A stretch of 64,000 nucleotides of DNA from Ophelia neglecta (taxonomy: Eukaryota), in NCBI GenBank assembly GCA_965285935.1, contig OZ260662.1, positions 7,936,001 through 8,000,000 of the forward strand. The letters run 5' to 3'. Shown one piece after another: positions 4,397 to 60,789 of the stretch (position 1 is the stretch's first letter; each line of letters begins with the position of its first letter). A program made the translations under genes and the position numbers. The notes under the pieces are model-generated. The model saw nothing but the letters and a program-made list of their open reading frames with translations, was not told the origin of the DNA and ran no database searches.

Positions 4397-7300
4397 ATGA
4401 ACGCTTTCACTAGATGTCTGCTTGTGTGGCTAACTTGCATTCTTGGCATACAAGGTAAGCGAGAACATAAATGTTTACATAATTAATACCGTTTATTTAA
4501 CTTTTAATTCTATTTTGTACATATGTAGTCAAGAAAATATAACTCTCTCGTCTTCTTACTTTTACAACATATGAGACGGACGACTTTTAAAACCTTACCG
4601 CTGCAGCAAGATGGCGGATTAGCTATGCCATTTTAATACATAGTGATGAATGAGGCTAATATATATTGGTCGCCCTGTGTCATATCACAGGGGCTCTGTA
4701 GTCACATAATTTCTTTTAACTTGTATTTATCATATTCTTGACCCGACCAATATGCTCGAAAACCAACAACCGAAAGCCTTAAATCATTACTAAAAATTCC
4801 TTTTATATGAATAGGTACCTAATATAAAATTTGAATTTATTTTTGCAAATAATTTTCACTCGGATGTTGGCCTCATATATAATTGATACAAGAGTGCAGT
4901 GAACCCTCCAAATATATTAATGAAATCATATCATTGGCTTGGCTTTTAGTATATTCTTGACAACCTATTCATAGAAATTAGCTTCTTTGATAGGAACTGT
5001 ACCCCTGTCCACACTTGTCAGGTAATCTTCCGCTGGACATGCGGTCTATGTCCGGCACACCTTCGGTTCATCCATTGCATTCAGGTAACATTCCGGTCTG
5101 CGTGTCAGGTCCCCGACATCAATGAATGTGAACGAGTTTCAAACAAAACGCACGCCTAGTGCACAACCAGCGGACGACTTTGCCCGGAGGTGTCCCTTCC
5201 AACTTTTGTGCATTCACAAAACTTTCCGCCGGATTGAACGGACCTCACCTCACCGTAACTTGCCAGACAAAAACGCATTCGCCGACCCAGAAAAGGACAA
5301 GAAATGCATGTGAACAGAGACCAGTTAACGCTATCCGGCAAGATGTGACTGTACATTAAATAACATCTGTAAACAGACAACCTTTATGATCAGACCAGTA
5401 TTTTTCAGTTCATTGAGTGGTCTCAATTCACATGGTCCACTGTAAATGTGCTAAGCGATCAGACCGGAAGTATATTATATCTAACATGCCTCGTTCATTA
5501 ACTCCTGTATTAAAGGGGCTCATTCTACAACTAAAAACTTAAGGAAGTATCAATAACACACGTGCTTCCCAAAGTCTAGTTCTAATTCCTATAGGTTTCA
5601 TTAAAGGTTCATTTGTTCAAATAATGTCTTTATATTTTACGATAAATTCCAAATACAACTAAATATCACTAAACGAAATAACGACTTTTATGTTTGGGCA
5701 ATCATTGCTGATGGTCAATTGGTTGAGGTCTTCGGACACACTTTAGGCATGGGAAACTGTGACTTATTAAATCTATCGACATACACCCAGTTTGCATCAA
5801 AACATCAATTATTCATTAATCCCATTGAGCGTCCATTTTGCGTCAGCTGTGACCTAATATTTACGGCGTTCGTATGATTTAATACAATACGGTACGCTGT
5901 GAGCGCCCGGGCAGGTGAAAACTTGTCTCTTACCACGCACACGTCTTATTGACAACAAATAGCCAGCGTCTGGACCCATCTGAAATATTTATGACTAATT
6001 AACCACTCGCATCCGAGCGTGACAAAAGAAGGGCGGATCGAAACGTACTAGTTTTGGCACCCATGACGAGACTTCGTGTCGTTGAAATGTTACAGTCATG
6101 CAAGATTACTAATTTTGACAATCCTCTTTGCTGACTTTGCACTGCCATAAACCTACCGTGTGTGTCTTCATTATTTACTTGATCAAAATGCAAAGAAAAC
6201 TTTTTGATCAAGTCACCATCCTTAGCAGACAACCGCTGAAAATTTCGGTTCCCATGGTTATTATTAACAATATAATATTATGACTATGTGTTTTATTATT
6301 AAATCTGGAAATCAACATAGGCATTACACACAATATCATAGAACCACATAAATGTACCATATACATTAACCATGTACCATCCTGTTAAATCAATCGGATT
6401 TAAGGATAACACAACATTAGGATAATCAATTTATTGTACCAAAGCAGCCCGGGCACACCCACACGCCTCACCCCCACCCCGCCGCAGAAGACACGATGTA
6501 CCCCACGCACCACCGCCGCCATCACTGGTGGTCGCCAGCTGTTTTCAGGGAACACCATCCACGCCACGAAGGGAAACCTATATTAACGAGGACTCAGAAG
6601 GCCCTACGCCCCCCCCCCCCCAGCCCCCCACTCCAGGAAGAACGGGCCGAGGCCACCCAGGTCACATCCGGACCCACCAATAGTCAGAGCCAACAATGGT
6701 CAAGAAATTTGGAGAAAACTGTTACTCAGTTTTTTTTTCAAATGAGACTGAAGATTTCTCTTTGAGTAATGAATGGAGCAAAAATGATTAGTAGTTAAGA
6801 ACGGGTAATTATATAATAGTATCGCTTGGTGAATGATACATATAGGCTGAACTCCAGATTTTATGCCTGATACATGACATGAAAATGTCTGGCCTGTCTA
6901 GTGTCATAGCTGTGTACACCGATATTTAAAATAAAGATGACTCACAGTTTGGCACAAGACCATGCAAAAAGTTTGTGTATAGATACAAGTAGTATGTATT
7001 TATAAGCTTAAGCAATGGATGACACTTTTAGCTAAGAAAGTAGTTCACTGGTTATTTCTGGGAGAGCCTGTACTAATTCTCCCTGATCTCTTTTTTGTAA
7101 TTGTAATAGGGGTCCATGGTAAATAGAAATTATACTCCCCCATACCTCCAAGCAGTAGGTAAACATACTATTTATATATTTATAAATTCTCCAATGTAAG
7201 GATTGGATTCCTTTTTAAATTATCACTATAAAAGTCACCGATAAGAAAATAGTTCTTACCTTCAGGTTTTAGTTTAAAAAATACACTAATATAATAATCA

Positions 7301-59600: not shown

Positions 59601-60789
59601 AAGGTACGTGGTTTTTCCCTTCCCATTAATCCACGGTACGTAGTATCCCCATCGAACATAAAGAAATCACAGGGAAAATAGGCGTAAGATAATGCCCTGT
59701 ATGTGGCACACTTGATCAGTAGAGTGCGAAAAGACAAGGCCTGGTCAGACTTTGGACCAATGCGATGTGCCCGGTCGAGGACTAAGACACTGATTGGTGG
59801 TTCCAAACTCATTGTTTTGTCACAGATATCCAGCTCTGTTTTGACTTGATCCTCATGGAGTGGTTCAAATACGTTGCTCATCTTCAGACTGTTCAACCTA
59901 CTGTACTGCTCCAAGTCATCATGAAGCAGCTCCAAGACAATACTCGGTCATTGAGGCTTTGGACTTGTTGGTCCATGGCCTTACTTAATCACGCGGCACC
60001 CCTTCCTCCTTGGAGTGATCTTTATTTGACCTCTGAAACTTATGACATTCTTACTGAGGCTTTTAGTTGAGACTTCTAGTTGGTTGATGCTCGGTCATTG
60101 AGGCTTAAGATTTGTTGGTCCTTGGCCTTGGTCCTTTGATGGTCCATGGCCTTCACTAAATCACGCGGCCCCCTTCGTCCTTGGAGAGATCTCTGAAGCT
60201 TATTGACATTCTTACTGAGGTTATCAGTGGAGGATTCTAGGTAGTTGATGCTTAACTGATAGGATCAACGAGGGTGCTATGTAGGGATTTAATGACAGCC
60301 TCAATCTGCATGGCAAGCACAAAGGCGCTAAAGAACTCCACTGTCCACTAAGTCCCATACTAGTTGAAGATTTTCTAAGCCACATTCACAGTGTACAGCA
60401 GGGTTACTTCAGGGCTGGTGTCTTCAATACAACTTATACATACACCGATATTACTGTGGGACAATACATGTGATTTTTTTATTACAGAGACAGTTGACTG
60501 CACTTCCGCTTCCCCGAAGCTAACCGTGAATGGAGAAATGGACCATGTATTCTTCCAGTCTCTCCCCATCCTCCATCCGATGGTAACTGCCATCGAGCGC
60601 GGCGTGCTTGTGAGGAGTTGTATCGCCGGCGGGTGCGCCCAGGCTTGTCTCATGACCTCAGAGTGCCGGGCCTTCTCACTGGACTCCTCTCTGGAAGCCC
60701 CGCAGTGCTGCGAGCAGTTCGCTATTTCGCCAAACACGGGTGTTAGGTATGGGGCCGGGATGTCACCAATGTTTCTCCAAGTTGGCTAA
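53695..60789 (+). CDS. Gene 5: PLAT-like + PAN-like paralog (236 aa)
   Basis: Exons 53695-53752 (MDARIRLILVLLAWIPLMR-G; 58 nt and the same CTGTTAACATG context as gene 1), 56558-56705 (ELFLIKLYTSATPYFAGSIDSPYLTLHGTTDTEAGIKIWEDGFETTLGM), 57693-57789 (VTDLLFYTKKNVGHVINITLSSGGSNGYVMAQ), 58595-58700 (MSMTNVLTRETCHVICAPLCSIDTGDINEPDSVTR) and 60488-60789. Total 711 nt, open. AATAAA at 60845. Confidence 0.88.
53963..54329. mobile_element. Poly-G TIR MITE with 9-bp TSD (Mutator-like) in gene 5 intron 1
   Basis: CCAG(G)nTACTC...GAGTA(C)nGG, with TSD GATCTGTGT at 53954-53962 and 54330-54338. Confidence 0.8.
54364..54688. mobile_element. MITE with perfect 15-bp TIR (hAT-like)
   Basis: CAGGCCCGTAGCCAG...CTGGCTACGGGCCTG. 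No clear TSD. Confidence 0.7.
55450..56340 (-). mobile_element. Decayed CR1/L2-type LINE RT fragment
   Basis: Minus-strand translation gives GQVSEDWKATRVSPIFK, VCFLDSQKCLDT and [22 protein letters not shown]...LFADDT. Confidence 0.85.
58003..58150. repeat. 50-bp tandem repeat, ~3 copies, each containing CCAAT
   Basis: ACCAATCAGT recurs at 58041, 58091 and 58141. Confidence 0.8.
58690..59625 (+). repeat. ~30-bp minisatellite beginning at the exon 4 splice donor of gene 5
   Basis: Unit approximately CAAGGTAAGTAGTTTCCCTTCCCTGTTACA. The 3' part is a 61-bp two-unit higher-order repeat. Confidence 0.9.
59690..59950 (-). mobile_element. LINE ORF1 remnant
   Basis: DDLEQYSRLNSLKMSNV...LDRAHRIG...LLIKCATYR matches the motif pattern of non-LTR retrotransposon ORF1. 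Confidence 0.7.

Follow-up and report, generated by a model that had tools for sequence, protein, structure and literature searches.

Five small spliced genes in a tandem cluster

We analyzed a 64-kb stretch of the Ophelia neglecta genome (GenBank assembly GCA_965285935.1, contig OZ260662.1, positions 7,936,001 to 8,000,000 of the forward strand), which contains no N runs, has a G+C content of 40% and is referred to below as the window, with positions counted from its first letter. An earlier note, made from the letters alone, had proposed that this DNA hides five spliced genes for small secreted proteins combining a PLAT domain with a PAN/Apple-like domain. Five small spliced genes were found clustered in tandem in the window, and their predicted products are cysteine-rich and probably secreted. 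A six-frame motif scan recovered five occurrences of each conserved motif quoted for this family, and both their order and their strands agreed with the note: at 7.6–10.9 kb (+), 14.6–17.0 kb (+), 27.4–22.5 kb (−), 40.9–36.1 kb (−) and 56.6–60.8 kb (+). We designated these paralogous exon sets g1 to g5 and their exons E1 to E5; g1/g2, g3/g4 and g5 are treated as three lineages.

Using stop-to-stop open segments and splice sites, we recovered five co-linear sets of E2 to E5, and the recomputed boundaries reproduced the exon sizes given earlier exactly. On the plus strand, g1 consists of E2 at 7598–7742, with which the N-terminal beta-rich domain starts, E3 at 8057–8156, E4 at 9269–9368, which carries a C-x-V-x-C-x3-C segment, and E5 at 10666–10961, which encodes the PAN/Apple-like domain in this and all other copies. 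It is followed on the same strand by g2, with E2 to E5 at 14599–14743, 15101–15200, 16307–16406 and 16740–17041. The next two copies lie on the minus strand, g3 with E2 to E5 at 27239–27383, 25890–25986, 23921–24026 and 22523–22824, and g4 with the same exons at 40777–40921, 39428–39524, 37459–37564 and 36062–36363. Finally, g5 is again on the plus strand, with E2 to E5 at 56558–56705, 57693–57789, 58595–58700 and 60488–60789. Splice sites define all of these exons; they were supplemented by the motif scan for E2 of g1, g3, g4 and g5 and E4 of g1, by alignment for E2 to E5 of g1 and E5 of g2, by cross-lineage DNA matches for E3 to E5 of g5, by Pfam matches for E5 of g1, g3 and g5, and by a structural model and Foldseek for E5 of g1.

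The exon structure was nearly uniform across the cluster. E2 measures 145 nucleotides (nt) in g1 to g4 and 148 nt in g5; E3 is 100 nt long in g1 and g2 and 97 nt in the other three copies; E4 is 100 nt long in g1 and g2 and 106 nt in the others; and E5, including the stop codon, is 296 nt long in g1 and 302 nt in g2 to g5. For the E2 to E5 sets of all five copies, all acceptors are AG dinucleotides preceded by pyrimidine-rich tracts, all donors are GT, the intron phases are 1/2/0/1, the codons split at the junctions never form a stop, and the stop codon falls at the same alignment column. The predicted products are 232–239 residues long. Position 4397 is the ATG of g1 E1 and position 60789 the end of the g5 stop codon; no sixth copy was found in the window by tblastn with the exon peptides. 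A single long multi-module gene was also considered and ruled out, since the strands differ and each unit ends in a conserved stop. The idea that small spliced genes form a compact tandem cluster here was thus borne out, and that of five spliced models in part: E2 to E5, with their phases and sizes, are present in all five copies, but E1 could be found only in g1 and g5.

Coding constraint on the five exon sets

The E2 to E5 frames are intact in all five copies although amino acid identity per exon between the three lineages is 33–53%, which agrees with the earlier remark that the frames stay open despite strong divergence. The ratio of nonsynonymous to synonymous divergence (dN/dS), calculated per exon by the Nei–Gojobori method and then summed, was 0.27–0.34 between lineages at a saturated dS of 1.1–1.7, and the synonymous excess was pronounced (Fisher p from 2e-10 to 2e-13). 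In addition, cross-lineage DNA matches obtained with g5 as the query all fell on exons (E1, E3, E4 and E5). The shared phases and splice sites, a dN/dS of about 0.3 and the confinement of similarity to exons therefore point to protein-coding sequence held by selection, indicating that the five sets are genuine coding genes, or were until recently. The ratio was 0.11–0.25 for exons 2 to 4 and 0.39–0.49 for exon 5. Gene-wide selection is thus purifying, and the C-terminal domain is freer yet still far below 1.

These results bear on two other views of the locus. The cluster is embedded in sequence of long interspersed nuclear element (LINE), long terminal repeat (LTR) element, short interspersed nuclear element (SINE)-like and minisatellite origin, as might be expected if the frames had arisen by chance or belonged to a transposable-element module rather than to host genes. 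Conserved phases and splice sites, a dN/dS of about 0.3 at saturated dS and exon-confined similarity all argue against this; moreover, the units show no flanking transposon hallmarks and only five copies occur in the window. On the coding-constraint evidence we rejected both forms of this explanation, which we regard as extremely improbable. The description of the cluster as diversifying was likewise not supported at the gene-wide level, the ratio being well below 1 for every pair.

The C-terminal exon encodes a PAN/Apple-like domain

The Pfam models PAN_1, PAN_2 and PAN_4 all matched the same 30-residue core of the exon 5 peptide, at residues ~42–78, in g1, g3 and g5, with E values of 0.002–0.05 and scores of 13.8–18.5 bits, below their gathering cut-offs of 21.1–27. 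A profile built from the exon 5 peptides of all five copies gave five matches at E ≤0.001 among 1.84 billion representative proteins. Three of these, including the best two (E 1.6e-5 and 7.3e-5), have strong PAN_1/PAN_4 domains where the profile matches, and hhalign aligned the cysteine core of exon 5 with that of one such PAN protein at a probability of 79%. A PDB sequence search with the exon 5 profile gave chance matches only.

Exon 5 contains seven cysteines that are invariant in the five copies, and exon 4 contains three more. In all five exon 5 peptides, C49, C53, C59 and C73/C74 are invariant, forming a C-x3-C-x5-C core followed by a distal cysteine. An AlphaFold model of exon 5, built from the five-sequence alignment, had a predicted local distance difference test score (pLDDT) of 60.5 overall and of 71–79 at residues 41–80. 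In this model, strands at residues 21–26, 33–37, 61–64, 74–78 and 91–96 form a five-stranded sheet, against which a helix (residues 46–55) carrying the C-x3-C pair is packed. None of the PDB structures that Foldseek retrieved with this model matched significantly (best E 0.1, TM score 0.38–0.45), but the entries listed were nearly all PAN/Apple structures: S-locus receptor kinase, the HGF N domain, plasminogen and the MIC4 apple-5 domain, as well as an Eimeria PAN domain, factor XI A4, prekallikrein and the HAI-1 MANEC domain.

Each of these lines (the three sub-threshold Pfam models, the PAN proteins among the best profile matches, the hhalign alignment and the Foldseek list) is weak by itself; taken jointly, we accept them as pointing to a divergent PAN/Apple-like domain in exon 5, in line with the C-terminus proposed in the earlier note. 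The closest known proteins are those of the PAN/Apple clan (PAN_1, PAN_2, PAN_3, PAN_4 and MANEC), such as HGF/plasminogen N domains, factor XI/prekallikrein apple domains, apicomplexan MIC4 and Eimeria PAN modules and plant S-locus receptor kinases. Exon 5 resembles them in its C-x3-C-x5-C core, which the model places on a helix ahead of a strand, and in a cysteine pair farther on. It differs from them in its seven conserved cysteines, including an adjacent CC, where four to six are usual, in being the lone, C-terminal PAN module of a very small protein, and in scoring below every Pfam gathering cut-off, with no orthology found to a named PAN protein.

The N-terminal domain may be a PLAT-type sandwich

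Exons 2 to 4 encode about 110 residues directly after the leader. Exon 2 modeled alone gave four predicted beta strands at a pLDDT of 50, and the Foldseek matches of this model were noise, with no PLAT structure among them. The Pfam PLAT model (PF01477) did not match single exons at E ≤10, the fragments of 32–48 residues being too short for a fair test, and profiles of the equally short exons 2, 3 and 4 retrieved chance matches only from the PDB sequences. The top PDB match of exon 3 was a pancreatic-lipase-related protein, at an E value of 1.4 over 12 residues, which is not significant. To us, as to the earlier note, the strand pattern of the N-terminal domain looks PLAT-like. PLAT is a sensible lead for this beta-rich domain, which may belong to that type. 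The fuller proposal, that a PLAT-type lipid- or membrane-binding sandwich is joined to a PAN/Apple module in a secreted protein of ~230 residues, representing an undescribed architecture in a taxon-restricted animal family without an annotated member, is put forward here only tentatively.

The earlier note went further, proposing that the genes of such a PLAT and PAN/Apple family encode immune, toxin or mucus effectors and form a birth-and-death cluster that diversifies. With ~110 residues, an all-beta prediction for its exon 2 part and a place right after the leader, the N-terminal domain would fit a PLAT-type sandwich; the PAN-likeness of the C-terminus is supported, the tandem duplications and a truncated copy (see below) fit a birth-and-death process, and exon 5 evolves faster than exons 2 to 4. 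However, PLAT was not matched at the exon level, the gene-wide dN/dS is well below 1 in every pair, and three lineages are too few for site-wise analysis of selection. We consider this version unlikely. Alternatively, the N-terminal domain could have a different or new beta fold fused to the divergent PAN module. The failure of exons 2, 3 and 4 from the three lineages to match PLAT in Pfam or PDB profile searches, and of the exon 2 model to retrieve a PLAT structure, would be expected in that case; set against this, such short fragments do not test PLAT fairly, and fold matches at a pLDDT of 50 are meaningless. This alternative is possible, and we hold it as tentatively as the PLAT-type sandwich itself.

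First exons and duplication history

The E1 sequences of g1 (4397–4454, +) and g5 (53695–53752, +) are each 58 nt long and share 70% DNA identity. Both begin with an ATG and encode a basic residue and a hydrophobic core of 11–12 residues before a strong phase-1 donor. Judged by inspection, they are plausible signal peptides, with cleavage predicted at the exon 1/exon 2 junction; the secretory leader earlier claimed for the family thus holds, as a plausible feature, for these two copies only. In both genes an identical octamer containing the palindrome GTTAAC directly precedes the ATG (4389–4396 in g1 and 53687–53694 in g5), and it may be a conserved initiation or 5′-untranslated-region element.

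The first exons of the remaining copies gave a different picture. DNA comparison and tblastn detected no E1 homologue between g1 and g2. The two copies derive from an older tandem duplication (7459–21231), the blocks of which are ~90–94% identical. The duplicated unit starts 140 nt before exon 2, leaving exon 1 outside, and ends ~2.4 kb past the stop; the second unit starts at 14460. That g2 has no exon 1 is thus explained by where the duplication begins. For g3, a weak exon-1-like stretch was seen near 28.65–28.69 kb, which has no ATG-initiated hydrophobic frame in g3 or g4 and is at best a degenerate homologue. About 0.5 kb farther out lies a 70-nt candidate E1 (29153–29222, −) with a hydrophobic leader and a phase-1 end, a copy of which is present in g4 (42691–42760, −); both are unconfirmed, and they are not homologous to the E1 of g1 and g5. 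At the 3′ end, AATAAA or ATTAAA hexamers lie 56–160 nt past the stop in g1, g2 and g5 (searched at 10962–12200 for g1 and 17042–18200 for g2), and none was present within 1.2 kb past the stop in g3 (22522–21300) or g4 (36061–34860). As far as can be read from the DNA, g1 and g5 are the sole demonstrably complete copies, and the notion of five intact members was not supported: g2 lacks exon 1, and g3 and g4 form a near-identical pair with candidate first exons only.

This pair lies in a 13.5-kb unit that is present twice, head to tail (18632–32148 and 32153–45680), with 99.4% identity between the copies. The coding sequences of g3 and g4 differ at 4 of 639 sites, two synonymous and two nonsynonymous, a rate equal to that of the surrounding non-coding DNA. 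The pair would stem either from a duplication that happened very recently or from an artefact of assembly or haplotypes. The g1 and g2 coding sequences, in comparison, have a dS of 0.09 and a dN/dS of 0.33, and their differences are skewed to synonymous sites (p 0.007), suggesting that at least one of the two copies stayed constrained. Gene birth by tandem duplication, as the earlier note envisaged, is evident in both units, and comparison of the copies shows at least two rounds of tandem duplication and one inversion in what we reconstruct as the origin of the cluster.

These observations raise the question of how many loci function. There may be only two or three, g2 being a dead 5′-truncated copy and g3/g4 either pseudogenes or one gene doubled by an assembly or haplotype artefact. 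The exclusion of exon 1 from the g1/g2 duplication, with no homologue upstream of g2, the missing ATG-started hydrophobic frame in the exon-1-like stretch of g3/g4, and the g3/g4 coding divergence at the non-coding rate within nearly identical 13.5-kb units all fit this explanation. Conversely, E2 to E5 frames and splice sites are intact in g2, g3 and g4, the g1–g2 changes are biased to synonymous sites, g3/g4 have a good alternative leader exon, and splicing from g1 exon 1 into g2 is conceivable. We regard the smaller number of functional loci as a serious possibility, if short of an even chance.

Relatives in databases and the literature

No orthologue or paralogue outside the window was found in protein searches, the library of which does not hold the source genome. 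Besides the exon 5 profile search, these comprised a word-indexed search with a 147-residue open frame holding g2 exon 5, which gave zero matches. In DNA-pattern scans, prokaryotic genomes were searched for exon 5 and Joint Genome Institute (JGI) metagenomes for both exon 5 and exon 2; these produced pattern matches, none of which was confirmed. Full-text literature searches likewise yielded no family combining PLAT with PAN/Apple. The architecture thus appears to be without a named family in the protein libraries and the literature searched, as the earlier note had surmised.

The nearest parallel that we found was a study of spider mites, in which short single-PLAT proteins and PAN proteins were described as separate families, each expanded, the former being otherwise known from plants only (PMC6288829). 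Like the short secreted single-PLAT proteins of the plant PLAT1 type and of tetranychid mites, the proteins predicted here are small, with a leader followed by one domain of beta-sandwich size, and the mite PLAT family is also lineage-specific, arranged in tandem clusters and without similarity to other taxa (PMC6288829). Unlike them, the g1 to g5 products do not end after this domain: the single-PLAT proteins have fewer than 200 residues and no reported PAN module, whereas the models here have 232–239 residues and an extra PAN-like exon of ~95 residues. The PLAT/LH2 domains of lipoxygenases, pancreatic lipases, polycystin-1 and bacterial alpha-toxin are similar to exons 2 to 4 only in size and in the predicted all-beta character of the latter; those proteins have a catalytic or membrane partner domain, whereas the models here have no catalytic domain and share no significant sequence match with them.

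Repeats and mobile elements around the cluster

A BEL/Pao-type LTR retrotransposon lies between g4 and g5 (45931–51190). Its LTRs are 471 nt long and 99.6% identical, and it contains one open frame of 1439 residues (46412–50731) with matches to gag-like DUF1759, an aspartyl protease, a reverse transcriptase and the Pao peptidase_A17. No integrase domain was detected in it, from which we infer one deletion. LINE fragments with RNase H and reverse-transcriptase matches were found at 2079–2987 (+), 17777–19188 (−) and 32075–32728 (−); the closest database relative is 48% identical, and the named relatives are arthropod proteins at 35–38%. The 13.5-kb duplication containing g3 and g4 starts inside the fragment at 17777–19188.

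Minisatellites occupy 24547–25790, 26152–26685 and 26745–27038, with copies displaced by ~+13538, and are also present at 58692–59624, 30906–31107 and 44448–44649. Their units measure 27/54, 16, 30/61 and 67 nt; in g3/g4 they fill the second and third introns, and in g5 the fourth. A G-rich skew peak at 24–28 kb and long spurious repeat-encoded open frames are due to these large minisatellites. A dispersed repeat of ~185 nt was detected at 3866–4050, 9710–9894, 61374–61554, 63177–63337 and 5358–5443, in both orientations and with 72–83% identity between copies; it resembles a SINE but matched neither a tRNA nor Rfam. Intron 4 of g1 contains one copy, and this segment is absent from the homologous g2 intron. 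Rfam and tRNA scans of the window found nothing.

Interpretation

The explanation that we favor overall, and consider probable, is that the locus carries a lineage-restricted tandem family of small five-exon animal genes whose products have a PAN/Apple-like C-terminus. In such a protein, the leader encoded by its own 58-nt exon would direct secretion; exons 2 to 4 would form an N-terminal all-beta domain of ~110 residues, possibly a PLAT-type sandwich; and a short three-cysteine segment would lead to the exon 5 PAN/Apple-like domain with its seven cysteines. The protein would be secreted and disulfide-bonded and would act as a non-catalytic extracellular binder. By analogy with other PAN proteins, the PAN/Apple module may recognize proteins or glycans, and the N-terminal beta domain may provide a second binding surface, for lipid or membrane if it is of PLAT type. 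Within the family, g2 would be a 5′-truncated copy, and g3/g4 would be one gene copied very recently or by the assembler.

Several points weigh against this explanation. In the C-terminal domain, these are the Pfam scores below the gathering cut-offs, the low overall confidence of the exon 5 model and the lack of a significant Foldseek match; in the N-terminal domain, the negative PLAT and PDB profile searches. At the gene level, splicing and expression are read from conservation alone, g2 has no exon 1 homologue, the exon-1-like stretch of g3/g4 has no ATG-initiated hydrophobic frame and their alternative leader is unconfirmed, no polyadenylation hexamer was seen downstream of g3 and g4, and protein searches gave no relative outside the window. 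On balance, extracellular binding proteins without catalytic activity are the most likely products suggested by these sequences. Roles in immunity, as toxins, or in mucus or matrix are conjecture.

The locus has no bearing on a long-standing open question. If expressed, the genes would encode secreted binding proteins of a lineage-specific family, one easily overlooked by annotation pipelines because of its short exons, its lack of homologues and the repeat-rich DNA around it. The cluster offers a clean case of gene birth in which tandem duplications are nested and one copy lost its leader exon in the process, and the union of a PAN/Apple module with a small beta domain would extend the known architectures of extracellular recognition by a new combination.

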